Below the pieces are notes generated by a model, which was not told the origin of the DNA, searched no databases, and worked only from the letters and a program-made list of their open reading frames with translations. A stretch of 64,000 bases of DNA from Blastocystis sp. Blastoise (lineage: Eukaryota > Protista > Bigyra: Opalinata). The position numbers and the translations under genes are program-made. This document shows, piece after piece, positions 1 through 50,370 of the stretch; within the stretch, counting starts at the first letter, position 1, and each line of letters opens with the position of its first letter. The stretch spans positions 62,001-126,000 of the forward strand of contig JBBPEB010000014.1 in NCBI GenBank assembly GCA_039096225.1, written 5' to 3'.

Positions 1-1422
<1,422 letters not shown>

Positions 1423-2019
1423 CTATATATAATATAATAAGATTAGCATAAAATATTATAATATCATTACTATTATAAAGCAAATAGGCAAAAAAATTCC
1501 CATTGGTCAGTTTTTGGAAAAACCATTTGATTGGCTAAGGTATACTATAGTTTGTACCCACAACTCCTCTAAACTTACGGGGAGTTAACTTTTGGTTGAA
1601 ACACAGTTCAATACGATATAAGCTGTAGTTTTGCACCGTATATTTGGTTAAGCGATATTGTTTATAATTAAAAAGTTATTAGTAAAAAAACAGAAAACAT
1701 GATTTTTGAGTCGTTTTTGATTGGCTCTTTGGGATCGTCCCGATAAAAATTGTTGACCAGACAATTGAAAAATAAACATGGGGTAAACTTGATTTTTTCT
1801 CAATCCCACAATATACGTTATCCGTGTTTATTCTTTATATTTATCTATTTTTTAATACTTTTTCATATTGAACACGTGAGGCCTTAACGGTCAAATTTAG
1901 ATTGTCAATTTGACATCATATTCTGATTCAGGAGGTCAAAAAACCTAGGTGTACCAATTTTCAGCTCCTGAGGACGATTTTTGAGTGATCGATATTTTCT
2001 TCGATCTTCTTATAATTGA

Positions 2020-3200
2020 CTAATATTACAGTATTGTAATTAATAGGTCCTCAAACCACTATAGTCAAAGCAGAGTCTTAAAATAACGAGTTTGAGTGTC
2101 ACAATTTTGAAAAATGTGAATTAAGTGGTCTTAGAGGACAAGATTCAATATAATGACTTTTGTTTAGTAAACTAGAGATATTACTCTATACTATATCAAA
2201 ACAAGAGTCAAAATTAATAGGGTCAAAGTATATGAGCAAATGACAAAATGTGTCTTAAAAAGTAAAAGGGTTTCTATATGTGTTTAGAATCATATATTAA
2301 GTCTATTTTATGAATAATAGCTTTAAATAAATAGTTTAAGGTTGTCAAATTCAAAAGAATGTGTAAAACATAGTCTTAGACTTTGAATAAAAAATTTAGA
2401 GATATTAATTAGTGTACAGCTGTAGTAGCTCTACAACATATCAAAAGTACAGTTAAAATAATTTTTAAAGAATGGATGTGTGAGGTGTTGTGACTATTAT
2501 TTAAAATTTATTTTTACTTCAGTTTATGTTAAATCATGAATTTCGTGCACTATAAAAAAATTGAGCCAAAAAATTAACTCTAAGGGTCTTAAATTTAAAA
2601 AAATGTAAAAATGAGTGACTTAGAGGACGAGATTCAAAATAAGAGTGTTTATTCATTAAACTAGAGTGTATGACCTATATTATGTTAAAAGGAGGGACAA
2701 AAATATTTTGATCAAAGTGTATGACCAAATGGTAAAGTGTCTTTAAAAGTGTTATGGTGATGACAGTTGTTGTTATCGATCCAAGTCAAGTCTACTCTTA
2801 AAATATTAGCTTTAAATAGCAAGTTAAAGGTTGTCTATTTGTCAAAATGTTTTAAAGACTGTCCTAAAATAAGAGATTCAAGAAGTTGACTTTCATTTTA
2901 TACATTATATGTCTATATAAATACTTTATCAAAAGAACTTTGGAAAATATTGTCGATTAGTGTTTTGCCAAATGGTAAAGTTGTATCAAGAGTTGATTGT
3001 TTCCATTCATTTTTGTTTAAATCAGTATTTTATGTCCACTCTATAAAAACTATCTTTTAATACTGAGTTTAAAGTTTTAAAGTCAACATGTGTGTTTGGT
3101 TTGTTTACTTTTAATTATTAAAATTGAGTTTAAATCAATAAAACAAGTTTAACACATGTATTTTGATTGATATAATCAGTTTTAAGATGACTTGGCTGTT
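2020..3200. repeat. Degenerate ~244-bp tandem repeat (4-5 units) in outer Helitron
   Basis: Recurring motifs (G)AGATTCAA at ~2141, ~2630, ~2872 and CAAATG at ~2237, ~2726, ~2969 give spacings of ~244 and ~488. Confidence 0.7.
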
Positions 3201-3401
3201 TAAGTATAAATGGATTTGTTCTCATTGTGACTGTTATTGAGAAGAGGAAGTCTACAAAAAATATAAAAAGTTAGATATATATATATAAGGTCAAAATTGA
3301 AAAGTATAATTTAAAACAAATAAAAATAAGGTTAAAAAAAGAGAATATATATATATATATAATAATATGTAAATAAAATATTTAAAAAAAGAAAAATAAG
3401 A

Positions 3402-3468
3402 CTTCATGTCAGGAATTGAACCTGAAAACAATCTATAATGATTGCTTCTCTCCTTCTAGAGCATAAAG
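3402..3468 (-). ncRNA. tRNA-like cloverleaf, copy A
   Basis: Minus strand CTTTATG-CTCT agaagg AGAG-AAGCAATC attata GATTGTTT-TCAGG ttcaatt CCTGA-CATGAAG: four stems, a GG-containing D-like loop and a T-loop/B-box GGTTCAATTCC. Confidence 0.7.
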
Positions 3469-3491
3469 GGAGTTTAAAGAGTAATAATAAT

Positions 3492-3529
<38 letters not shown>

Positions 3530-3535
<6 letters not shown>

Positions 3536-4135
3536 GGAATGAAGGAAGTAGGAAGAATGTGGAAGTAGGAAGTAGGAAGAAAGAAGAAGGAAGGATGAAG
3601 GAAGAAGGAAGAAGTAGGAAGAAGGAAGAAGTAGGATGAAGGATGAAGGAAGAAGAAGGAAGAAGGAAGAAGTAGGATGAAGAAAGAAGGATGAGGAAGT
3701 AGGAAGAAGAAGGAAGAAGTAGGAAGAAGGAAGAAGGAAGAATGAAGGATGAAGGAAGAAGAAGGAAGAAGGAAGAAGTAGGATGAAGAAAGAAGGATGA
3801 GGAAGTAGGAAGAAGAAGGAAGAAGGAAGAAGAAGGAAGAAGGAAGAATGACGGATGAGGAAGTAGGAAGTAGGAAGGAAGAATGAAGAATGAAGAATGA
3901 AGAATGAAGAATGAGGAAGTAGGAAGAAGAAGGAAGAAGGAAGAAGAATGAAGAATGAAGAATGAAGAATGAAGAATGAGGAAGTAGGAAGGAAGAATGA
4001 AGAATGAGGAAGAAGGTAGTAGGAAGGATAAGGAAGAAGTAAAATGAAGTAGAAAGAAGGAAGAAAGAAGAAAAAGGAACAAGAAGACTATTAAACCTAT
4101 ATACAATAGAAAAAATATAAAAAGATAACATAAAA

Positions 4136-4166
<31 letters not shown>

Positions 4167-4238
4167 AATAAATAAATAAATATAATAAATATAATAAATA
4201 TAATAAATATAATAAATATAATAAATAAATAAAAAACA

Positions 4239-4310
<72 letters not shown>

Positions 4311-4327
4311 TATATAAATATATATAA

Positions 4328-4374
<47 letters not shown>

Positions 4375-4855
4375 AAAACATAAATAATAAATAATAAAAA
4401 TGAAAACAATAAATAAAATATAAATATATACCTAATGGATTAATCTGAAACCACAGACTAAAGAAGAACGACATGAAAAAACGAAGACCACAACACATCA
4501 ACAACATTTTCTTTCCTATAGAATAAAAATAATTAAAAACTATTTAATAGATGATATAAAAAGACAAAATAAATAATATAGATAATAAAATTAAATAATA
4601 ACAAAAAGTAATTAGTAAAAAATAAACAGATGTTAAGAAATAAATAATATATTTATATACCTGATAATAAGTAACCCATTTCACACAACCAGGACCACTT
4701 TAAGAACCACTCACCACCACAACCAAGACAAATACAAGAGAATCCTATAAAAAAGTGTATTATTATAAATAAATAAATTAATATATACAAATAAATATAA
4801 AAATAATAACTAAATAACATCAAATTAATTAATAAAACATACCCAGACAATCAAT
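3530..4855 (-). other. Spliced Helitron-internal transcript, divergent from the microexon gene (coding status unclear)
   Basis: Conserved GT-AG exons 4744-4661 (GFSCICLGCGGEWFLKWSWLCEMGYLLS) and 4515-4432 (GKKMLLMCCGLRFF...), and an exon from 4096 into the CT-rich tract. The splice sites are kept in the nested copy; no clear upstream ATG. Confidence 0.5.
3533..4090. repeat. Polypurine (GAA/GGAA/GAAT) low-complexity tract
   Basis: ~550 bp built from gaag/gaagga/gaatga/gaagtag units; inverted homologue at ~11300-11730. Confidence 0.9.
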
Positions 4856-4891
4856 ACAAACAAATATTTAAAAAATGTAAAAAACTATAGT

Positions 4892-4907
4892 TTTTGGGTA
4901 CCCAAAA
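4892..4907. promoter_or_regulatory. Perfect 16-bp palindrome TTTTGGGTACCCAAAA between divergent transcription units
   Basis: Exactly conserved in the nested copy (10607-10622) while its flanks diverge. Confidence 0.5.
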
Positions 4908-5100
4908 TGTTTTTAACAAAAAATGACCCAATTATCAGCTTAGCATAAGATAATAATGAAAATTCGAGGTTATTTATGATTCCTATTAATTTTTAAATAT
5001 GCATATTTTAAATATTGTCCCTATTTTACAAAAGTTCAAATATGAATATGTTTTTGTTTTCTACATAAAAATACTTATTTTTATTAAATTATTAAATAAG

Positions 5101-6453
5101 ATGCCTAGAAAAGGCAGAATGTCATCAAGGCGGAGGTCCTTGAACAAAAAAAACTACCTTTCTCAAAGACGGTCCAGTATGTATTGTATTTATTTTTTTT
5201 TATTATTCATATATAGGTTCTTCTACTCAACAGGATACAAGTATGGATGTCATTGATGGTGATGGTGCTTATCAATATGGTCTTGAAAGTATATATTTAT
5301 ACATTTCTTTTTGTTTTATTATTTTATATTATCTTAGGCTCTTCTATGTCCTTGGTGTCCTATTCTGATGATGGTGTGAGGTTATCGTGTGGTCCTGAAG
5401 GTATGTTGGCATTCATTTGTTTTTATTTTTATATTTTATTTTCTATAGGTTCTTCTATTGTTGTGGACTCTGTTGCTGGAGCTATTGATGGTGATGTTAA
5501 CTCTACTCACGGTCTTGAAGGTATGTTGTCAATCATTTATTTTATTTTTTTTTATTTTTATTTATCTATAGGTTCTTATACTCATGATGATGTTGTTGCT
5601 GATGCTATTGATGGTGGTGTTAACTCTACTCATGATCTTCAAGGTATATAATCATTCATTTATTTATTTATTTTTAATTATTTCTTTTATTTCCTATTTA
5701 TATTTTATTATAGGTTCTTCTGTTGCTGTGAATGTTAGTGCTGATGTTATTCATGAAGAAGGTATATATAATCTATTTTCTTTTTCTTCTTTTTGATTTA
5801 TACTTTTATTTTATAAATATATATAGGTCCTTCTGTTCTGATAGTGTCTTCTGTTCATGGTACTGTATCTGATGGTGATCATCCTTCTGAGGCTAAAGGT
5901 ATATAGATATATCATATATATATATTTATTATTTTTCTTTTAATTCTTTCTTATTTGTTTTTATATAGGTCCTTCAACTCAGTTAGTACATGGTCATTCC
6001 TCTATTCCTTCTTCAGAAGGTATATACATATATATATGTATCTATGTTTATTCTATTTTATGATTCTATATAGGTGTGTCTTTTAATTTGGGATCGTGTG
6101 ACTCTGATGTTGGTCTTGATATGGTTACTACTAATATATATAAAGGTATATATATATATATATAATATTATTTATTTATTTATACTTATACTATTGTATA
6201 TATATATATATATAGGTGATGGTGTTAATAATTTTTCAGTCGTTGATGGTGTCAACAATTCTTCAATTATTCAAGGTATATATATACTTATATCATATTC
6301 TATACTTATATAGGTTCAAATAAAGTTGTGGGTAAGTATTATTTATTATTTTAGTTTGTTTTTCTTTTGTTTTATTTTTTTTTTTCTTTCACAGATAATA
6401 GCTTTCTGTTGTCTGCTTTCTTTTTATTATCTATTTATATATTTATTTACTAA
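5101..6453 (+). CDS. Helitron cargo gene: 12 short exons joined by phase-1 introns; basic N-terminus, acidic Gly/Ser/Val/Asp repeats, hydrophobic tail
   Basis: ATG 5101 MPRKGRMSSRRRSLNKKNYLSQRRS, then exons SSSTQQDTSMDV..., GSSIVVDSVAGAIDGDVNSTHGLE, GSYTHDDVVADAIDGGVNSTHDLQ ... GSNKVV, DNSFLLSAFFLLSIYIFIY* (TAA 6451-6453). All introns are GT-AG and the spliced frame is open. Confidence 0.75.
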
Positions 6454-6984
6454 GCTTAGCTTTAGCTACTTAGTATTTAAATATTTAATAGAATCCTTTC
6501 TTTTTTCATTTTTGTTTTGTTATTTTTTTTTATTTTAATTTTACTTTAATCGTATCGATTAACGGGAAGGTGTCGGATATTAAGATAATTTTTGAATTAC
6601 TTAATATTAAATAGTGTTGAGTATTTTAATATTTGTATTTAATTTAATTAATACAACTATTGATTACATATATGACTCATACTATTGCTGACTATTGTTC
6701 GCTTCTAACTCTATATAGTCTAACCGATGTAATACTATCAATGATTGAGATATCTAAGTGTTAAGATTCTTCACTTACTCACATTGTATATGATATTAAC
6801 TGGTAGTTAGCTATATGTTTATAGAATGTTGTAACAAAGCACAATAGCTATAGATGCCCGCTATGAGGTTGAATCATATAGATTGTTTAATAAATTATAC
6901 AATATTAATTACCTATACTTATTTAATATTAGTTTTCATTAATTATAATATTATCTTTCATTACATTATAGTATTGAAGATAAT

Positions 6985-7422
6985 TATTAATTAATAAAGT
7001 TTTTACTTTATATTATTTAATATATCATACTATATGTATATATTATTATATTAATAAAGGTTATATACTTTATATTAATAAATATATCATAGTATATCTA
7101 TGTATTATTATATTAATAAATGTTATATACTTTATATTAATAAATATATCATAGTATATCTATGTATTATATTATATTAATAAATGTTATACTTTATATT
7201 AATTAATATATCATAGTATATCTATGTATTATTATATTAATAAGAGTTATATACTTTATATTAATAAATATATCATACTATACTTATGACTTATATTATA
7301 TTAATAAAGGTTATACTTTATATTAATTAATATATATCATACTATACTTATGTATTATATTATATTAATAAAGGTTATACTTTATATTAATTAATATATA
7401 TCATATTATATTCTATGTATTA
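6985..7422. repeat. ~60-bp AT-rich quasi-palindromic tandem array, left part
   Basis: About 7 units of TATTAATAAAGGTTATACTTTATATTAATTAATATATATCATACTATAC/TTATGTATTA; continues at 13782. Confidence 0.9.
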
Positions 7423-7472
7423 CTAGGGTCACGCCGCAGGTCCGGGGCCTAACGGCACCGGACCGCGGCTGC
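7423..7472 (-). terminator. Helitron 3' terminal hairpin + CTAG of the nested element
   Basis: GCCGC GGTCCGGT GCC gtta GGC CCCGGACC t GCGGC gtgacc CTAG. Confidence 0.9.
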
Positions 7473-7630
7473 AATGAATAATAAGTGTTTTGTTTTTATT
7501 CACTTTCTTTCCTTATTATCTACTATATATTATATAATATATATTATTTATTAAATATTATCTATAATATGTTACTTATTATCTATAATATGTTACTTAT
7601 TATATATTATATATAGTATTTTATTAACAC

Positions 7631-7700
7631 TTCTTATACTCTATATGGAGAGTTACAATCATATATTGATTGTAATCAGGTTCAATTCCTGATATAAGAA
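7631..7700 (+). ncRNA. tRNA-like cloverleaf, copy C (diverged)
   Basis: TTCTTATA-CTCT atatgg AGAG-TTACAATCA tatat TGATTGTAA-TCAGG ttcaatt CCTGA-TATAAGAA; compensatory changes relative to copies A and B. Confidence 0.7.
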
Positions 7701-7899
7701 TTAAAATTTACTTTTGAATAGTATCTGAAAAACTAAAAACAATACTTTAAAAAAAATAAGAAATCGTTTTTGAATCATTATATTTGTTATTTATTATTTT
7801 AAAAATATATTTTGTATTTATAAATAGTTGAGTTACTGCTTTAATTATTATGGAGTTTCTAAAGCTAATAAATTTAGAAATGGGTCACAATGTTAAGTA

Positions 7900-8720
7900 T
7901 TGAAAGTCATTATTATGTAAAATCATTTTAAATAGATTATAATAAGGTAGTTTACACTTTCTTTAACCATTTCATAAAACTAAAACGAATCTAACACAAC
8001 AAAGTCAACATTCATTTTCACTTTAACGACTTAAACACATAATTTTAGAATTAATATTAATAAAGTCACTCTAAAAAGCATTTCTATACATAAAAGTGTC
8101 AACAATATCGCTTGTAAAGAGACTTCACCATTTTGATATCCAGTGTATCAAAATAGTTTTAGACATAACTTTCACATAGTATAGATCTCATTATTTCATA
8201 TATTACTTATAGTTGAATGTCTTGAATCTCTGACCTAAAGACCCTTTTTTATACATTTTGAAAAGTTAACACACTTATAGTTAATTTAAAAAGCTTATAT
8301 TTTAACACTATGCTCAACATAACTCTATCAATACATTAGCTACCATTTTGACACTCTTTATAAACATTTTTCATTTGGTCATACACTTTGTCAAGAGTAT
8401 TTTTGTCCCTCCTTTTAATATAATTCAGACTATAAATAATAGTTTGATAAATAAAATGTTTTATATTGAATCTCGTCCTTTGGATAATTCATTTCTACAT
8501 TTTAAAAAAATAATCCCTTTAAACTTGTTTTTAAAAGTCAAAATTTTCATAGTATAACAAAAACACAATTTTAAAAGAATAGACTTACTCTTTAAAATTT
8601 CTGAACAACTCAAACGCATTCTTAATTCACTTGTCAAAAATGAAATTCTCTTATTTTTTAATATGTTGTAGAGTACATGTTGTTCTATATTAAACAATTT
8701 CTATAATTTTAAATCTCTTA
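7900..8720. repeat. Third, diverged block of the ~244-bp repeat
   Basis: TTGAATCTC at ~8222 and ~8466; CATTTGGTCATACACTTTG at ~8372 matches ~12514 and ~13003. Confidence 0.65.
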
Positions 8721-8961
8721 ATTTAATAACCTATTTTTTCACATTTCTTATTGCTTAAAATTTTACACATAATTAAATATATAAATGAAAGTGGAGAATA
8801 CAAAACTTAATAATAACTCAATCATTGATGTAATTATATCGCTAGTCTATATCAGATTAGGTGATAAATGAATGTTATTATAAATTAAAACAATATTAAG
8901 GACCACATACTAATAACATTAACTAATTTCAAAATTATCTTAATAGTAAGCACAATAAAAA

Positions 8962-10412
8962 TTATAAAAAACGAACAAAACAAAAATAAATAAATAATAC
9001 TAAGAAAACAGATAATAGAAAGATATTATCTGTGAAAAAAAAAAATAATAATAATAAACAAAGCAAAACAAAACAAAACAAAAATAAAATAATATGTTAA
9101 GTATGCCAACCAAATTAGAAGAACCTATAGAAATAAAAGATAAATATATATATATATACCTTCAGCATTAAAGAACTATTTACACCATCACTATATAGAT
9201 AAAATATATAGATATATATATTAAAAGAAATATAAATATTTGTTATATATATATATATATATATATACCTTTAGATATATTTTTATTATTAAAATAAAAG
9301 CCAACATTAGGGTGATAAGATCCCCTATTAGAAAAGACACCTATATATAATAAATAATAAAAAATATATAAACAATAAAAATATATATACCTTCTAAAGA
9401 AGGAACAGAAAAATAAGTATCATATCATAACTGACTTGAAGAACCTATATATAATGATAAGATAATTAATAAATTAAAAAAAAAGAAAGGAAGAAATAAG
9501 TATATACCTTTCATTACCTATAATAGAAGACTCGATCAGAATAGAAGGACCTATATATAAATAATAAATAAAAATAAACTAAATTAAATTAAAAAAATAG
9601 ACATACCTTAATTATTAACACCTTCAGCAACCACACACACAACAATAAAAGAACCTATAAAGAAACAGTAATAGACAAATAATAAATAAAAAAATAATAA
9701 TAATAAATGAATGACAATATATATATATACCTTTAATACCATAGGAACAGTCTATCTGATCACCAACAACATCAACAGCAGTATTGAAAACATCAGAAGA
9801 ACCTAAATATATATAAAAGTAAAAAAGAAAAATAAATGAATGACAACATACCTTCAACACTACACAGATATCTTCATCTACACCACTGTTTACATGCACA
9901 GCAACTGAAGAACCTATATATATATATAGAAATAATAAAAAAATAATAATAAAATATAAAAATAAATTAAATGATTGGCAACATACCTTCAATACAATAA
10001 GAAGAACCTACAATCACATCATTAGAACCATTAGCATCATTTAAAACAACAGAAGAACCTATAAATAAAGAAAAGTTAAAAAAATAAAAACAAATCATTG
10101 ACAACATACCTTCACAGTTAGCATAACAGGCAACACCACCACCACTGCATAATTCAAATAGCATAGAAGAACCTAAAATAATATAATAAATAATTTAAAA
10201 AAAAAAAGAAATGGAAAAATATATACATTAAAGACCATCATAGCAAGTACCACCAAGACCAAGAGCATACACAACTGGATTTTATTGAGTAGAAGAACCT
10301 AAATATGAATAATAATAACAAATAGATATAATATACCTGATTTTCTTTGAAATATATATTATTTTTTATTTCCAGACCTCCTCCTGGATGACATTTTGTT
10401 GTTTTTAGACAT
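8962..10412 (-). pseudogene. Nested-element copy of the microexon gene, with in-frame stops
   Basis: ATG 10412 MSKNNKMSSRRRSGNKK*YIFQRKS (TAA where the outer copy has AAC); TGA in the exon at ~9392-9444; same GSS...G exon architecture; ends DNIFLLSVFLVLFIYFCFVRFL*. Confidence 0.7.
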
Positions 10413-10659
10413 CTTATTTAATAATATAATATACAATTAAGTATTTGAATATGTATTTAAGAATCCTATTTCATTTGTATTAATAAATATAATAGGGTCT
10501 ATTTTCAAAATATGCTTCTTTAAACATAATAGAAATCAAAAAAAACCTTAATTTTTCATTGATTTATTTACTAAAGTAATAATTGGGTCATTCTTATTTA
10601 AAATCATTTTGGGTACCCAAAAAACATAGTTCTTTACTCTTTTTTTAAATATTTAATTA

Positions 10660-11730
10660 TATTGATTGACTGAGTATGTTTTATTTATTTATTTGATATT
10701 GTTTAGTTATTATTTTTATATATATTTGTATGTATATATTTATTTATTTAAAATAATACACTTTTCTATAGGATTCTTTTGTATTTGTCTTGGTTGTGGT
10801 AGTGAAGGGTTCTTGAAGTGGTCTTGGTTGTGTGTAATGGATTACTTTGTTTCAGGTATATAAATATATTATTTATTTCTTAAGATCTGTTTTTCTTTTT
10901 GTTAATTCGTTTTTATTATTTATTATTTTTATTATCAATATTATTTATTTAGTCTTTACATATAATTTATTCTATATATTATTAATAATTTTTATTCTAT
11001 AGGAAAGAAACTTCAATGGATGTGTTGTGGTCTTCGTTGCTAAATATTTTCCTTCTTTAATCTGTCGTTCAAGGTTATTTTAAAGGTATATATTTATATT
11101 TTATTTATTATTTTTATTATTTATTGTTTACATTTTTTTTTATTATTTATTTATTTATTTATTATTTATTTATTCATTTTTTTTATATGTTTATTTATTT
11201 ATTAATTATATATATATATATTTATATATATATTTATTGTTTATTATTTATTTATTTATTTATTTATTTATTATGTTTATTTATTGTATATAGGTTTAAT
11301 ATTCTTCTTAGTTTTTTTTTTTCTTCTTTCTATCTTCGTTCTTCTTCCTTCTTACTTCTTCCTTCTTCCTCATCCTTCCTACTTACTTCATTCTTCCTTC
11401 CTTCTTCTTCCTTCTTCCTTCTTCTTTCTGCCTTCTTTCTTTTCATTCTTTACTTCTTCCTCCTTCTTCCTTCTTCCTCATTCTTCCTTCATTCTTCGTA
11501 CTTACTTCTTACTTCTCCCTTCTTCTTCACCTTGGTTCTTCATTCTTCTTCCTCCTTCCTTCTTCCTTCTTTCTTCTTCCCCATCCTTGATTCTTCCTAT
11601 TTCCTTCTTCCTCATCCTTCTTTCTTCCTTCTTCTTCATCCTTCCTTCTTACTTCTTCATCCTTCCTTCTTAAACTTCCTCCTTCCTTCTTCCTTCTTCC
11701 TTCCTACTTCCTACTTCCTACTTCCTCCTT
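10660..11730 (+). other. Nested copy of the divergent spliced transcript and CT-rich tract
   Basis: Exon GFFCICLGCGSEGFLKWSWLCVMDYFVS; next exon GKKLQWMCCGLRC* (stop); then the CTT-rich tract. Confidence 0.5.
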
Positions 11731-11777
11731 ATTATATATATATATATATATTATTATTATTATTATTTATAAACTCC

Positions 11778-11844
11778 CTTTATGCTCTAGAAGGAGAGAA
11801 ACAATCATTATAGATTGTTTTCAGGTTCAATTCCTGACATGAAG
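11778..11844 (+). ncRNA. tRNA-like cloverleaf, copy B
   Basis: CTTTATG-CTCT agaagg AGAG-AAACAATC attata GATTGTTT-TCAGG ttcaatt CCTGA-CATGAAG. Confidence 0.7.
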
Positions 11845-12049
11845 TCTTATTTTTCTTTTTCTTTAATATTTTTTACGTATTATATATATATATATATTTT
11901 CTCTTTTTTTAAACTTATTTTTATCTCTTTTAGATTATACCTTTTAAATTTTGACATTATATACATATATCTAACTGTTTATAGTTTTTTTAGACTTCCT
12001 CTTCTCAACAACAGTCACAATGAGAACAAATCCATTTTAACTCAAACAA

Positions 12050-13220
12050 CTAAGTCATCTCAAAACTGTTTGAATCAATTAATATAGACGTCTATGACAT
12101 AATTTATCAATTTAAACTGATTTTCAACTCTCAAAAGTAAGCAAACCAAACACACATGTTGACTTTAAAACGTTAAACTCAGTATTAAAAGATAGTTTTT
12201 ATAGAGTGGACATAAAACATTGATTTAAACAAAAAGGAATGGAAACAATTCACTCTTGATACAACTTTACCATTTGACAAAACACTCATCCACAATATTT
12301 TCCAAAGTTCTTTTGTTAAAGTGTTTATATAGACATATTATGTATAAAATGAAAGTCAACTTCTTGAATCTCTTTGTTTAAGATAGTCTTTAAAACATTT
12401 TGACAAATTGACAACCTTTAACTTATTAGTTAAAGCTAATATTTAAAGAATAGACTTGATTCAGACATATAAACACAACTGTCATCATCATAACACTTTT
12501 AAAGACACTTTACCATTTGGTCATACACTTTGATCAAAATATTTTCGTCCCTTCTTTTAACATAATATAGATCATACACTCTAGTTTAATGAATAAAAGC
12601 TCTTATTTTGAATCTCGTCCTCTAAGTCACTCATTTTTACATTTTTTTAAATTTAAGACCCTTAGAGTTGACCTTTTGACTCAATTTTTCCACAGTGCAC
12701 GAAATTCACGATTTTGCTCAAACTGAAGTAAAAATAAATTTTAAATAATAGTCACAACACCTCACACATCCACTCTCTAAAAATTATTTTCTTTGTACTT
12801 TTGATATGTTGTAGAGCTACTACAGCTGTACACTAATTAATATCTCTAAATTTTTTATTCATAGTCTAAGACTATGTTTTACACATTCTTTTGAATTTGA
12901 CAACCTTAAACTATTTATTTAAAGCTCTTATTCATAGAATAAACTTGACTTAACATTCTATACACATATGCAAACCCTTTTTCTTTTTAAGACACATTTT
13001 GTCATTTGGTCATACACTTTGACCTTCATAATTTTGACTCTTCTTTTAACATAGTATAGAGTATTATCTCTAGTTTATTAAATAAAAGTCATTATATTGA
13101 ATCTCTCACTCTAAGACCACTTAATTCACATTTTTCAAAATTGTCATACTTAAACTCATTATTTTAAGACTCTGTTTCTACTATAGTAGTTTGATGACCT
13201 ATTGATTACTATGATACAAT
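12050..13220. repeat. ~244-bp degenerate repeat block in nested Helitron
   Basis: Reverse complement of 2020-3200; TTGAATCTC at ~12364, ~12608, ~13097. Confidence 0.7.
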
Positions 13221-13781
13221 ATTAGTCGATTATAAGAAGATCGAAGAAAATATCGATCACTCAAAAATCGTCTTCAGGAGCTCAAAATCGCTACACCTAG
13301 GTTTTCTGACCTCCTGAATCAGAATATGATGTCAAATTAAGAATCTAAATTTGACCGTTAAGGCCTCACGTGTTCAATATGAAAAAGTATTAAAAAATAG
13401 ATAAATATAAAGAATAAACACGGATAACGTATATTGTGGGATTGAGAAAAAATCAAGTTTACCCCATGTTTATTTTCCAATTGTCTGGTCAACAATTTTT
13501 ATCGGGGTCATCCCAAAGAGCCAATCAAAAACGACTCAAAAATCATGTTTTCTGTTCTTTTATTAATAACTTTTTAGTTATAAATAATATCGCTTAACTA
13601 AATATACGGTGCACAACTACACGTTATATCGTATTGAACTGTATTTCACTCAAAAGTTAACTCCCCGTAAGTTTAGAGGAGTTGCGGCGACAAACTATAG
13701 TATATAGTAGCCAATCAAATGCATTCTCCAAAAACTGACCAATGGGAATTTTTTTGCCTATTCTCATATATATAGTAATGA

Positions 13782-14015
13782 TTATATTAATAAAGGTTAT
13801 ACTTTATATTAATTAATATATATCATACTATACTATATGTATGTATTATTTTATTAATAAAGGTTATACTTTATATTAATTAATATATATCATACTATAC
13901 TATATGTATGTATTATTATATTAACAAAGGTTATACTTTATATTAATTAATATATCATACTATATCTATGACTTATATTATATTAATAAAGGTTATACTT
14001 TATATTAATTAATAA
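13782..14015. repeat. ~60-bp tandem array, right part
   Basis: About 4 further units in the same orientation as 6985-7422. Confidence 0.9.
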
Positions 14016-14122
14016 TTACTTCAACAACCATAACAATGAAAGTTAATTTATATAATACACAACTAAACTTTATTCTAAACTTAAACATAATATAATTAAT
14101 ATCTAACTATTAATATATATAG

Positions 14123-14795
14123 GTTCCAATAAGGATAAAATAAATAATAATGATTTATCTAAATCATTTGGTTTTAACACTAAACCTTTAGCTTTGTTTT
14201 CGACTTTTAATATACAAAATAATATTCCTTTACAAAACATTCAAAACAATAATTCAAATAACAATATTGATATTGATATAGATAATGATTATTCACAAAT
14301 AAATAATAATAATTCTATGTTAAATAATGGTTCAAACCTATTCAATCAAATGAATCCAGTTAATCAATCAATTAATAACATATCTATTGTTCAAAGTCAA
14401 ATTAATAATAATAATCAATCTATTCCTATATCAACTACTATTATACAACCTACAGAAAAAAATACTTTTGTTTCTAATAATAATAATGATTCTATTAATA
14501 CTTCTTCACACTCTTTACCTGTTGTTACTACTATTCCAACTGATGTAAGTATATCTAACAATAATAATTCTGCAATCATTAATGATAATACGAATCATTC
14601 TATAAATAGCATTAATACTAATAATAATGAAACAATAATACAAAGAAATAATAGATCTATTAATTCTATCATGAATAGTTATTTAACTATTCCTGATTTA
14701 AGTCCTATTCTTCCTCCTTTAAGTTTGATAACAAATATTCCTCATATTAATTTAAATAATGATAATGAATCAGAAATTATAACAACAATACCTAA

Positions 14796-14853
<58 letters not shown>

Positions 14854-17800
14854 TTTTCTGATAATGATTCTGATTCTGATTATATTGATCCTTTTCCTGA
14901 TATCAATAGTAATACTCAAAACAATGATGAAATACCAGTTGTAAGAACTATTAGAAGACCTATAACAGATAATAGTATTTTTTTTATTATTTAAATATAT
15001 TTATTTAATACTTTTTTATAGTTGAAGAAGACATAACTATTCATCCTATTATTAATAGAGGAAGAAGAAGAGCTTTAGATATTTGTATGATATTTATATT
15101 CTATAATTCTTTATGAATAATTAAATAATAAAATTATTTTTATAGATAATCAACAAAGATTATTATATCCTGGATTACATAATTGTATTGCTTCTATTCA
15201 AAGAAGTATTTATATATATTTAATATTTATTTTATATTATTTTATATAGATTCTCATGGTGATTTTGTTTTAAATGAAGCATTGAATACTTATAAAGCTA
15301 ATTATTTAGGTGATTTTAATGTTCATTGTGAATATTGTCATGCTAAACATTTTGAATTAGAGAAAGGAATGAATGATAAGTTTTATACTTGCTGTGGTAG
15401 TGGTAAAGTAGTTCTTCCTGAACTTCCTGATCTTCCTAATACTATTCGTTCTTTGTTAAGAAGAGATAATCCAGATTCAAGAGAATTTATTAATAATATA
15501 ATTCGATATAATAATTCTGTTGCTTTAGCTTCTTTAGCTGGAAATAATACTTCTGATGATGATTTAAGAAATTCTTCTGGACCTTTACTATTTAAATGTG
15601 GAGGTAATATATATCATACTTTTAAGAGTGCTTTAGATTTTGATGTGAATGATCCTACAAGACATCCTGTATTCAATCAGTATTATATGATAGATGGAGA
15701 TGAAGCTACTCATATGAGAAGTATGAATCGATATTTTTGTGATTTAAAACCAAATATTTTAGAGATATTAGATAGTACAATAAGAGAATATCATCCATTA
15801 GCTCAAATATATAATTCACTTCGAGAAAGAGTAGATGAAGTAATAGAAGAGAATAGCCAAATGAATAGAAATAATATTAATTTATTAATAGAGTTTAAGA
15901 AACAAAGAAGAGAAGTACCTGATATAAGAAGATATAATACTCCTCAAGTAGATGAAGTAGCAGTAATATATCAATATAGAGAAGGAGGAGTAATGCCAGA
16001 AAGAAGTTATTGTTGTTTTCCTAGAAGTGGTATGGAAATAGTAGCTACTAATAGTAATAATGAACAGAATCGTTATACTTCAGGTCAATATATAGTAATG
16101 AAGAATACTAATTCATATATAGATTGTATGGTTTATCCAGTTATGTTTCCAACTGGAAGACAAGGTTGGTATCCAGATTTATTATCATTGAATCGTTCTA
16201 ATCAAATTACTATTACTATGTTAGAATATTATAATTATATGCTTCAAATGAAAGATCCACCTTATGATAATTATTTATTAAAATATAAGAAATTAACTTT
16301 ACAATATATTACTGATAATTATATCCGTGTTGAACAATATAGATTGAATTATATACGAAATAATCAAAATAAGTTAAGAGCTTCAACTTATCAGAATATA
16401 AATAATATGTTAGAAGAGAGAGGAGATCAAATAAATGAGAATGATAGAAATATAGATAGAATAGGTAAAGCTATTATATTACCTTCTTCTTTTGTTGGTA
16501 GTCCAAGAAATTTACAACAGAAATATATGGATGCTATGAGTGTAGTTCGAGAATATGGTAAACCTGATTTATTTATTACATTTACTTGCAATCCAGATTG
16601 GTTAGAAATTAAGAATAATATTCCAGAAGGTTATACTGTTAATGAATTTCCAGATTTAGTTTCAAGAGTGTTTCATTTAAAGTTGAAACAATTACTTTCT
16701 GATATAAAGGATAAGAATATATTTGGTACTGTAGAAGCTTTATTATATTCAGTAGAATTCCAAAAGAGAGGTTTACCACATTCTCATATATTAATTATTT
16801 TAGATACGAATTCTAAATATAGAACAGAAGATGAAGTAGATAGTATAATAAGTGCAGAGATTCCTGATAAAGAATCAACTCCTCTTCTTTATGAATTAGT
16901 TAAGAAACATATGATTCATGGTCCATGTGGTCCTGATTATGATACGAATTGTGTTTGTATTGATAGATCAACAGGTAAATGTAGTAAGAGATTTCCAAAA
17001 GAATATATAGAGCAAACTAACTGTCATTTAAATTCTTATCCTTTATATCAAAGAAGAAATATTCCTGATAGAACTATTACTCTTATTCGTAGTCACAATA
17101 CTTATACTATTGATAATCGTTGGGTAGTTCCTTATAATCCTTATTTATTATTGAAATATCAAGCTCATATTAATGTAGAAGTATGTTGTAATATTCAAAG
17201 TACAAAATATATATATAAATATGCATTAAAAGGAAATGATTCTGTGATAGCTCAATTACGAAGAGTGAATGATAATGGAATAGTAGACGAAACTCAAGCT
17301 TATTTAGATTGTCGATATGTTTCTCCTCCTGAAGCTTCTTATCGTTTGAATTGTTTTGAAATTACTTATAATTCTGTTTCTATTAATAGATTACCTATTC
17401 ATTTACCTGATGATCCATATATATTATTTCGAGAAGGACATGAAGAAGAAGCATTAAGAAATAGTTTAGAGAAAGGTACTAAATTAACAAAATACTTTGA
17501 TTTAGAGAAAGAAGTTCAGAATCAAAGAAAGATATATACTTATTATTATATAGAGAAGAAGCATGGTATTCGTAATATGAATAATGTAGAAGAAGAAAGA
17601 GAATTGATTCAAGTTCGTTTAGAAGAGATAAATAGAATAAATAGTTATGAAGTAGATGATGATAATATATCCGAAGAATTATTGAAAATATTAGATGAGA
17701 AATATCCTATTTATGCTTATCATGAAATACCAAAATATTATGTATGGAAATCGAATACAAATACTTGGAATAGACGTCAGAGAGATATAAAAGCTTTAGG

Positions 17801-19862
17801 AAGAATGTATTATGTGAATCCAAAAGATAAAGAACGATATGCTTTGAGATTATTATTATTGAATACGAAAGGAGCTGATAGTTTTGATTCTTTGAAGATA
17901 GTAAAAGGATTGAATCGTAATGAACCTTATAGAACCTTTAGTGAAGCAGCTATAGCAAGAGGATTATTGAATAATGAGAGAGAAGTATTTGATTCCTTTT
18001 CAGAAGCTATTGTTTTTGCTACTCCATGTCAATTGAGACAATTATTTATTACTTATATTTCAGAATCATTATTAACAAATGTGAAAGAGTTTTGGATTCG
18101 ATTTAAATCATTTCTTAGTGAGGATTATAAACATTCAATGCATAATAATGAAATAGATTATATAAATACTCCTTTAGCTCAAGATTTAGATTCATCAAGT
18201 GTTATAGAAGATGATACTAATAGTGTTCTTCAAGATTATGAAATACGTACTTTACAAGATATAAAAGAGATGATGATAAGTATAGGAGTGAATTATAATG
18301 ATTTAGGATTACCTCAAGTAGAAGAACAACATCATTATAATGATTATAATTATAATCCTACTTTAGAATTACAAGAAGCTAATAGAGTAATAGAATTATT
18401 AAATGAAGAACAAAGAAATGCATTTGATAGAGTAATTCATTCAATAGAAAGTAGTAGAATAGAAGATAAGTTATGTTTCTTTATTGATGGTCCAGGTGGA
18501 AGTGGAAAGACTTTCTTATATAATAGTTTATTAAGTTATTTACGTGGATATAATAAGAATGTATTACCTGTAGCTTCAACAGGAATTGCTTCTACTTTAT
18601 TACCAGGTGGTAGAACAGCTCATAAACAATTTGGTATTCCTTTGAATGTTGATCCTGATTCTACTTCAAATATAGATTTAGCTAGAGATAGAAGAAAAGT
18701 AGAAGAAATAAGAATAGCTGATTTAATAATATGGGATGAAGCTCCTATGATGAAAGGTGATTGTTTTATGGTAGTACATAGATTATTATGTGATATAATG
18801 AATACAGAATTAGATATTCCTTTTGGTGGTAAAACAGTAGTATTAGGAGGAGATTTCAGACAATGTTTACCAGTTATAAGAAAAGGAACTCAAGCTCAGA
18901 TTGTTAGTTCTTCTATAAAGTTTTGTTCATTATGGAATTCTATCAAAAATAATGTTATTCATTTATCGAGAAATATGAGAGCTTTAGAAGGAGCAGATGA
19001 TTTTAGACAATGGTTATTACAAGTAGGAGATGGTGTTCTTTCTAATAATTATACTATTAGTCATCATTTAGATATAGATTATATTCCTATTCCTCCTCAA
19101 TGTATTGTAAATGATGATTTATGTGTTACTGTATTTGGACATAGAATCAATACTTCTCTTGATTCTGATATCAAACGATTAGCTTCTTCTGTTATATTAG
19201 CTTCTACTAATGATTGTGTTGGTACTTTAAATGATTTCATTGTTGATAATCTTCTTTCTGGAACTACTATTCCTTATATCTCTTCTGATTCTATTCTTGA
19301 TTCTGAAACAGATGATCCAGAATCAAATTATCCTATCGAGTTTATTAATTCTCAAACACCTTCTGGAATGCCTCCTCATATATTAAATTTAAAAATAGGT
19401 TGTATCATTATGCTTTTAAGAAATCTTAATCCTTCTAAAGGATTATGTAATGGTACTAGACTTATAGTTACTCGATTAGGATCAAATAATATTACTGCTA
19501 CTATTTTAAATCCTCCTCCTTCTCTTACTATTGATGAACGTACTGTTATTATTCCAAGAATCATCTGTAATTCAAATCCTGAAGATCTTCCTATTATTAT
19601 ATCCAGAAGACAATTTCCTATTCGTTTAGCCTTTGCAATGACTATTAACAAATCTCAAGGACAAACATTTGAAAGAGTTGGTGTTTATTTAGATCGTCCT
19701 GTCTTCTCTCATGGTCAACTCTATGTTGCTTTCAGTCGTGCTCGATCTTTCAATTCCCTTTTTATTAAGGTAGTTGATAGTGTTTCTCAAGGTAAGATGA
19801 TTAGTAGTAGTAATGAAATATTTACTAAGAACGTGGTCTTCAGGTCTACTCTAAATAATTAA
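14123..19862 (+). CDS. Helitron Rep-helicase (HUH endonuclease + PIF1-like SF1 helicase) with spliced Asn/Ser-rich N-terminal extension
   Basis: Zn-finger-like CEYCHAKHF...TCCGSG; Rep motifs FITFTCNP, VEFQKRGLPHSHIL, KYIYKYALKG; helicase motifs GPGGSGKT, IWDEAPM, GGDFRQCLPV, TINKSQGQTF, FSHGQLYVAFSR. Exons 14123-14974, 15022-15084, 15146-15205 and 15250-19862 join in frame via phase-1 GT-AG introns. True start unresolved. Confidence 0.97.
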
Positions 19863-20023
19863 ATGTTTTCTTTTCTTTTCTCTTCTTTTTGTTTTATTTG
19901 TTTTTTATTATTTATTTAACTTTTTACCTTTTCACTTTTTATTTGTTCTAAAAATGTTTTTAATAAACAAGATTGTTTTGTTAGCCCTTATTTAATACAT
20001 ATTTTAAAACCCAACTGAACAAC

Positions 20024-20073
20024 GCAGCCGCGGCGCGTCGCCGTTAGGCGGTGCGCCAGCGGCGTTACCCTAG
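20024..20073 (+). terminator. Helitron 3' terminal hairpin + CTAG of the outer element
   Basis: GCCGC GGCGCGTC GCC gtta GGC GGTGCGCC a GCGGC gttacc CTAG|T. Confidence 0.93.
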
Positions 20074-35915: not shown

Positions 35916-41838
<5,923 letters not shown>

Positions 41839-42525
41839 ACATTTATTTTACATATATTTTATAATATGTTTATAGCTATTTAACTTATTACTTTTCAAAA
41901 TATTTTATTATACTTAACCATTTAAGCTACATATCTTTCATAAACCATATTAATATTTATTATTAAACTTTTTTATTTCATGCAAATGTTATATTTTAAC
42001 CGAATCCAATTATATTTTATTATAATATATTTAAGAACTCTTTAATAATTTCATTAAACATATTATTGAACCATAGTGCTGTTTTAATAATATATATATA
42101 TATATATATATATGTTTTTTAAGCTAATTTATGATATAAAATATAGAATTTGAATAAATTATAAAACGTTATTCATACAACATATTTAAATAATGACTCT
42201 ATTAATAGAGACTAAAACATATTGAACAAAATGATTTTTTACTTTTTTCTTGTATGAGTGGAATTAAGCAATATATAGAATGAAACCCAAATATATATCA
42301 GAGTATATATGTTTAATTATCATTTTAAATTTATAAAGTGTTGCGTTTTTGAATGATATTAAAAAATATACATTTCCCTTTAATAGAATCTTAATATTGC
42401 TAATCTTAATAAAGGACAGAACAACAAACAAATAGAAAATAAGGATATTTATTATGAATAATATAATGAATAAAAAATATTTATTAAAAATTAAAATATA
42501 TATATATATATTTTGTATATAAAAA

Positions 42526-44174: not shown

Positions 44175-44508
44175 GATGTTCTATATTTTAATATCTTTAA
44201 ATTAAAAATAAAAATGAGAAAACAATAGAAAAAACTTTTTAATTTTGGAATCTAGAGCAAAATCTGAAAATCTCATTGTTTAAAAAGTACTAGCTTTGTG
44301 ATATTTTTCGTTTTTATATTTTTATATAGTTTTTTCTTATTTTTAATATTAGGCTGCATATATGATATATTCTGTATATATATATGTCTCAAAAATATGG
44401 TAAACACAAAAAAAAAATGACTTCTTAATTGATCTCAAGTTTGTTGTTCGTAAATAATATAACTGATATACGTATAGTACGCTTTATTCTTATAAAGAGT
44501 GTATTGTA

Positions 44509-50370
<5,862 letters not shown>

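Follow-up and report, generated by a model that had tools for sequence, protein, structure and literature searches.

What does a tRNA-like cloverleaf do inside a Helitron, and is it kept there by selection? The question arises at positions 11778-11844 of a 64,000-nucleotide stretch of DNA from Blastocystis sp. Blastoise (hereafter the window), where a preliminary description reported a Helitron-borne fold in three copies. All three are present in the sequences we read, and their fold is confirmed. Copy B lies at 11778-11844 on the plus strand and copy A at 3402-3468 on the minus strand; both are of type 1. Copy C, of type 2, is on the plus strand; it had been placed at 7631-7700, and although its presence stands, the covariance model sets its limits at 7632-7699. 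In each copy an acceptor-like stem of 7 bp is followed by a CTCT/AGAG arm of 4 bp, the 6-nt loop of which ends in GG, by a third stem of 8 bp closed by a loop of 6-7 nt, and by the T arm TCAGG-TTCAATT-CCTGA, after which comes the 3′ half of the acceptor stem. The four helices abut, with zero linker nucleotides in the window copies. This cloverleaf is the minimum-energy fold in 3 of 3 copies (-19.4, -19.4 and -21.0 kcal/mol), with z-scores against dinucleotide shuffles of -3.42 for copy B, -3.37 for copy A and -4.10 for copy C. The covariance model R1 gives 83.1 bits (E 4.8e-24), 81.4 bits and 90.4 bits for the same three copies. They are its three matches in a scan of the whole window, the next best candidate reaching 14.7 bits, and for the 17-nt T arm the window has 3 occurrences compared to 0.03 expected. 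The compensatory differences that had been reported between type 1 (A and B) and type 2 (C) are all found in the sequences, as is the single A>G change between copies A and B that makes a G:U pair.

The copies are carried by two nested Helitrons. The outer, autonomous Helitron occupies 1464-20073 on the plus strand, with its 5′ end (A|TC) at 1464 and its 3′ hairpin and CTAG|T at 20024-20073, and it carries copy A. Its RepHel ORF (15183-19862) is intact, encodes 1559 aa and matches the Pfam families Helitron_like_N (5e-56) and PIF1 (5e-64). At 7423-13781 it is interrupted by a second Helitron, which is non-autonomous, measures 6359 bp, lies on the minus strand and carries copies B and C; its 3′ GC hairpin and CTAG are at 7423-7472 and its 5′ TC at 13781. 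The insertion site is a 62-bp tandem array of the outer Helitron, parts of which lie on either side (6942-7422 and 13782-14056). Since the two Helitrons are nested in opposite orientation, the window contains a large inverted repeat of ~4-5 kb (1454-6450 versus 8978-13792), the identity of which declines from 88% to 74% towards the center. Copies A and B lie ~1.9 kb from the 5′ ends of the outer and the nested Helitron, respectively. They are therefore not independent, as they sit at equivalent positions in two diverged members of a single element family. Copy C is set back ~210 nt from the 3′ terminus of the nested Helitron, and the R1 scan of the window finds no type 2 copy in the outer autonomous Helitron. 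The Helitron termini show that 3 of 3 copies are antisense to their element, which had been claimed from the outset.

The 3′ terminus of a Helitron is marked by a GC-rich hairpin 10-20 nt before CTRR, on the sense strand of the element. We rejected the idea that the cloverleaf is this terminal hairpin, as it is located 200-730 nt (type 2) or several kb away, is antisense and also occurs outside Helitrons. A further inverted repeat in the window, 35916-41841 versus 44505-50370, is 99-99.8% identical over ~6 kb, contains AT-rich tandem arrays and is unrelated to Helitrons. The Helitron Rep domain has 51 matches in the genome, mostly in stop-free frames of 1476-1677 aa that fall into several length classes; these matches, located near contig ends, suggest an unusually large and apparently active Helitron population.

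The fold is not that of an ordinary tRNA. ARAGORN, a check that had been proposed from the start, calls no tRNA gene in the window, nor in ~50 loci that hold copies. In Rfam no match to the tRNA family RF00005 reaches the gathering score, and there is none at E ≤ 10 on positions 1-14000. Weak Rfam matches to RT-6, Plastid-ycf2 and emrB are far under their gathering scores and were taken as chance; the RT-6 RNA match (12363-12437, minus strand, 25.7 bits compared to a gathering score of 46.7, E 0.047) lies inside a periodic ~245-bp module of the Helitron and is probably a chance match. The real tRNA genes of the genome are located elsewhere. On two short contigs, G000:C9 and C12, tRNA genes with high scores are densely clustered and in mirrored order; the contigs probably represent the mitochondrial genome, in two copies or two orientations. 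On the model, ordinary tRNAs that contain the same 17-mer do not exceed 38 bits, compared to 78-93 bits for the element.

Several canonical tRNA features are absent: the third stem has 8 bp instead of 5, there are no linkers (positions 8-9 and 26) and there is no variable loop. The tRNA elbow is present, with G53, T54, T55, C56, R57, A58 and C61 (columns 45-59 of alignment A1, described below) and the GG of the D loop (G16 and G17). Third-arm loops are 5, 6 or 7 nt long and unrelated in sequence, and in two families an (AT)n hairpin stands in place of the arm. A decoding or suppressor tRNA was ruled out, as the length and sequence of this loop vary by family and (AT)n can replace the arm. The (AT)n variants L042, L044 and L054 (G000:C14:1301057, C14:1363397 and C20:1103952) form tandem pairs ~215 nt apart; the T loop of the upstream member reads TTCAACT, and its D stem, which is 6 bp long, covaries with the D stem of the partner. 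A tRNA-derived SINE was also ruled out: the copies lie inside DNA elements of 6-20 kb in which flanks are conserved on both sides, over more than 1.5 kb in every family examined, and in none of these families does the cloverleaf form the 5′ end of a short retroposon.

How far does the cloverleaf extend beyond the window? The assembly comprises 33.3 Mb in 34 contigs, with ~22% G+C. The exact 17-nt T arm occurs 213 times genome-wide and the pattern VAGGTTCAATTCCTB (the 13-nt core plus one base on each side) 258 times, and reversed control patterns have 0 matches genome-wide. The covariance model was run on the whole genome, and 150 candidates among the matches listed all score 77.6-93.3 bits. 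Among these matches, types 1 and 2 alternate at ~4.2-4.3 kb and are clustered near contig ends. This alternation is the signature of the 6.4-kb non-autonomous Helitron. Type 2 copies, among those listed, are always 200-730 nt from the same Helitron hairpin. On two other contigs, type 6 precedes RepHel ORFs by ~3.4 kb and is antisense to them; this is the type 1 position in other Helitron copies.

About one third of the copies among the matches listed differ both in their stems and in the DNA around them; of the carriers outside the window, those mapped are as follows. Type 3 lies 5.4 kb inside an element of ~20.4 kb bounded by inverted subterminal repeats of TTTGGGTATTTCTAACA, of which at least 7 copies are ~100% identical and to which elements of 16-24 kb are related. 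In the 13.5 kb around one type 3 copy there is no Helitron hairpin, no similarity to the window Helitron and, low-complexity frames apart, no ORF that reaches 90 aa. The carrier of type 7 is a different repeat, of which at least 17 copies match at 100% identity along 1.6 kb, and types 4, 5, 8 and 9, together with the two types that have an (AT)n hairpin as third arm, lie in further repeats. The cassette is common to Helitrons, the ~20-kb TIR element and other repeats that have no other detectable similarity. Seen from this distribution, the module is abundant, common to unrelated transposon families and not Helitron-specific; the term Helitron-borne holds for the three window copies but not as a limit on where the cloverleaf occurs. 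Among metagenome contigs with the 17-nt T arm (more than 120 contigs, 80 loci scored) the best score on the model is 37.9 bits, so that the element itself is not among these loci, which are ordinary tRNAs or matches by chance.

The large elements have features of their own. Elements of 16-24 kb with inverted subterminal TTTGGGTATTTCTAACA repeats spaced ~60 bp apart are found at G000:C8:21267-41622 and in at least 15 other places. The element at G000:C8:21267-41622 lies ~20 kb before the start of the window, and 7 copies of 20.35 kb are ~100% identical. The right-hand 11 kb of the TTTGGGTATTTCTAACA-bounded element contains no non-low-complexity ORF of 90 aa or more. Several TTTGGGTATTTCTAACA-bounded copies lie against RepHel genes or break into them. 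A tandem satellite of ~780 bp adjoins the 20-kb element at its right end (G000:C8:41630-46840, C8:7958-14916 and C20:1045796-1051575).

Covariation on further copies, which the preliminary description had named as a check together with a covariance model, was analyzed in alignment A1. It contains 26 distinct variants in 68 columns and is almost gap-free and unambiguous. In the four-helix structure 96.5% of 622 stem cells form standard pairs, compared to 81.2 ± 0.9% when the 3′ partners are shuffled (0 of 500 shuffles reach 96.5%) and 35-44% when the partners are slid by 1-3 columns; as these are transposon copies, common descent inflates the cell counts and accounts for part of the covariation. 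Changes on both sides are found in 16 of 24 pairs, compared to 10.1 in the shuffles and 2-5 in the slid controls, and the covariation score is 0.44 compared to 0.15 in the shuffles. The covarying pairs include 8 of 8 in the third stem, 5 of 7 in the acceptor stem, 2 of 4 in the D stem and the outer pair of the T stem (TCAGG/CCTGA versus ACAGG/CCTGT). Invariant in A1 are the T stem-loop, with the universally conserved T-arm residues, the GG of the D loop and the first two pairs of the D stem.

The fold is also marked by strand. Types 3a and 3b differ at three positions, and all three differences turn a Watson-Crick pair into G:U. Among the stem cells there are 15 G:T compared to 4 C:A combinations, or ~13 compared to 4 independent events (binomial, one-sided p ~0.02). 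Mutation alone would give both equally, so the excess implies that the fold is selected on this strand. On the model the window copies score 81-90 bits in the sense direction and 16-31 bits on the reverse strand. The reverse complement also folds, with z-scores of -2.4 to -4.1. The latter result, and the single-stranded stage of Helitrons, would accord with a single-stranded DNA cloverleaf used in rolling-circle transposition, for example as an origin for the second strand. We regard this as highly improbable, as the wobble pairs favor the strand antisense to the Helitron instead of the transferred strand and the module is also present in the TIR element and in other non-Helitron repeats.

Conservation points in the same direction as the covariation. 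The cloverleaf is 91-99% identical between element copies and the flanking 300-nt blocks 57-93%. Copies A and B are identical at 68 of 69 positions, compared to 70-93% in their flanks. Elements of types 3 and 4 can be aligned over only ~130 nt centered on the cloverleaf, with ~23 nt conserved upstream of it. The cloverleaf is the best-conserved island of its surroundings. Some single copies have disruptive changes in the T arm, for example CCTAA or GGCTC, and selection must act on those lineages that go on transposing. Such damaged copies are what one would expect of a neutral relic, in which a captured tRNA gene or SINE head decays while it is copied along with its host transposons, and Helitrons do often capture host sequence. 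A relic of this kind does not agree with the ARAGORN, Rfam and bit-score results given above, with the location of the real tRNA genes, or with the constant avoidance of the 5′ end of short retroposons. Nor does it explain why the same unusual architecture is found in ~11 subfamilies, with stems that covary and conservation above that of the flanks. We consider the relic very unlikely, and the reading is already largely refuted. Taken together, covariation, the one-strand wobble excess and conservation above the flanks in the larger set of copies indicate that the cloverleaf is kept as a selected, structured tRNA mimic and is no decaying tRNA, which bears out this part of the preliminary description.

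What could be the use of such a mimic? The T loop coincides with a B box, GTTCAATTC, which all 26 variants of A1 share unchanged and which perfectly matches GTTCRANNC, the B-box motif given for Dictyostelium Pol III genes (PMC5391098). Among further copies, departures from it are the T loop TTCAACT and one copy with GGCTCAATT. The A box (TRGCNNAGTGG) is partial: CT..A..TGG is conserved in the D arm and TRGC is absent. Downstream of each window copy there is a run of T. On the plus strand, a run of T5-C-T5 that resembles a Pol III terminator begins 6 nt after copy B (11850-11860); on the minus strand, T5-C-T7 follows 6 nt after copy A (3384-3396); and a T4 run lies 13 nt after copy C (7712-7715, plus strand). 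Across families, a run of at least five T within 30 nt downstream is found in 14 of 24 flank groups (58%), compared to 14% at 20,000 random positions in the same loci, and a run of at least four T in 19 of 24, compared to 33% at random positions; these values are to be read with the facts that T runs are frequent in this genome and that the flank groups are not fully independent. On the opposite strand, runs of at least four T occur in only 4 of 32. The trailer before the oligo-T run measures 5-18 nt in most families, and in 3-4 families (types 2a/2d, 7a and 9) there is no T run within 30 nt. Some trailers, and the last 8-20 nt upstream, are common to families in different transposons, which suggests a cassette of ~100-130 nt.

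The upstream side differs between families. Directly upstream of copy B, a CT-rich and G-poor tract followed by (TA)n and (TTA)n extends over 11313-11730 on the plus strand. The equivalent tract upstream of copy A, on the minus strand, has approximate limits of 3535-3950 and is matched to 11321-11730 by the inverted repeat; the GC skew is strong at 2001-4000. At other type 1 loci, C makes up 31-41% and G 0-4% of the equivalent bins. A tract of this kind, 0.3-1.3 kb long and on the same strand, immediately precedes the cloverleaf in types 1, 6 and 7. It could belong to a longer Pol II transcript of the transposon, at the end of which the cloverleaf would act as a 3′-end processing signal of the mascRNA type. 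In Helitrons this transcript would be an antisense CT-rich RNA: the 5′ cut by RNase P would make its mature 3′ end, and RNase Z would free a small tRNA-like by-product. The conserved top half of the fold and the free anticodon arm correspond to what RNase P and RNase Z need. Against this, most families (types 2, 3, 4, 8, 9 and those with an AT arm) have no CT-rich tract upstream, with unremarkable AT-rich DNA there in most, and only the ~23 nt mentioned above are conserved upstream between types 3 and 4. In addition, no A-rich tract or U-rich triple-helix motif precedes the cloverleaf, and hence the cleavage site, in the sequences inspected, and a processing signal has no need of the enrichment in downstream oligo-T. 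We consider a processing signal the less likely explanation, yet the main rival of the one favored below.

A different view is that the cloverleaf acts at the level of DNA only, as a B-box/TFIIIC insulator, a nuclear-positioning site or a landing pad for retroelements, and that the RNA fold has no role. The B-box T arm is invariant in nearly all copies, as this view predicts, and in Dictyostelium, Pol III factors appear to bind isolated A/B-box loci that do not resemble tRNA (PMC5391098). A site of this kind leaves unexplained why changes in the acceptor, D and third stems are compensatory, why a self-pairing (AT)n hairpin can serve as third arm and why G:U exceeds C:A on one strand. In dictyostelids, insertions of tRNA-gene-targeting retroelements are expected where full Pol III complexes assemble; no such insertions are found beside the ~60 copies examined, which also speaks against a landing pad. 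We consider a role in DNA alone unlikely.

The reading we favor, to which we assign a probability of roughly one half, is that the element is a transposon-borne Pol III minigene for a tRNA mimic, the product of which would be matured by RNase P and RNase Z. It fits the combination of a strand-specific selected fold, in which the top half is intact and the anticodon arm free, with a perfect B box and an oligo-T run nearby. Several observations weigh against it: the A box is partial, 3-4 families have no T run within 30 nt, T runs are frequent in this genome, common descent accounts for part of the covariation, and the ~60 copies examined lack neighboring insertions of tRNA-gene-targeting retroelements, which full Pol III complexes would be expected to attract in a dictyostelid if such retroelements are active in this genome. 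The proposed cassette of ~100-130 nt would consist of a short leader, the cloverleaf of 67-68 nt, a trailer of 5-18 nt and the oligo-T run. The internal B box GTTCAATTC would recruit TFIIIC and Pol III, and the transcript would stop at the T run and fold into the four-way junction. This fold would retain the top half of a tRNA, with its acceptor stem of 7 bp stacked on the T stem of 5 bp, its canonical T loop and the GG of the D loop, and would leave the anticodon arm free to vary. RNase P, RNase Z and the CCA-adding enzyme recognize such a top half. As it is retained, a stable, non-decoding RNA of ~70 nt is expected. We infer Pol III transcription, processing and a benefit to the transposon from these features of the sequence. 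The benefit might be that a Pol III/TFIIIC complex shields the element from read-through transcription or silencing, or that the tRNA-like RNA titrates a host factor.

How does such a minigene compare with known systems? Mimics of tRNA are known as the ends of host lncRNAs, as viral genes and as SINE heads. The mascRNA and menRNA at the ends of MALAT1 and NEAT1 are also small, non-decoding cloverleaves with few linkers, a degenerate anticodon arm and the acceptor/T-arm top half. They differ in that they derive from single-copy host loci of vertebrates and follow an A-rich tract and a U-rich triple helix, whereas the element described here is present in more than 250 copies on DNA transposons, without such upstream motifs and with an oligo-T run downstream. 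The heads of tRNA-derived SINEs are likewise related to tRNA, contain an internal Pol III B box and reach high copy number through mobile DNA. In contrast to the present copies, which lie inside DNA transposons of 6-20 kb with flanks conserved on both sides and stems that covary, they stand at the 5′ end of short retroposons and keep no covarying cloverleaf. The vtRNAs of murine gammaherpesvirus 68 (TMER) are non-aminoacylated tRNA mimics that are transcribed from internal Pol III promoters and cut by tRNA-processing enzymes. They resemble the present element as tRNA mimics carried by a genetic parasite; Pol III transcription is known for the viral units and predicted here. The viral units have pre-miRNA hairpins before the terminator, whereas here there is a trailer of 5-18 nt only. 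Finally, isolated A/B-box loci and tDNA insulators, such as the B-box sites of the Dictyostelium rDNA palindrome (PMC5391098), also have a perfect B box outside a true tRNA gene and may assemble Pol III factors, but they have no tRNA-like fold, whereas here a four-helix fold is kept by compensatory change. In the literature we found no description of a tRNA mimic that is kept by compensatory evolution on DNA transposons and is common to different superfamilies, and no paper that links Helitrons or dictyostelid transposons with tRNA-like modules.

Tentatively, then, the element may represent a new class of transposon accessory gene: a non-decoding Pol III tRNA mimic in a cassette of ~100-130 nt that would move between unrelated superfamilies (Helitrons and large TIR elements) and be kept by selection as it protects or promotes its carriers. 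As such an accessory gene, the cassette might block read-through transcription and silencing, or engage factors of tRNA processing and export. In the annotation of this genome, the element can also serve in practice to mark the most active repeat families. Should the RNA be made, it would show that cut-and-paste as well as rolling-circle elements can carry a Pol III RNA gene of their own. More than 250 natural variants in a small genome would then offer a tractable system in which to study the roles of a tRNA-like fold in a genetic parasite, with insulation, processing, export and decoy as the candidates.
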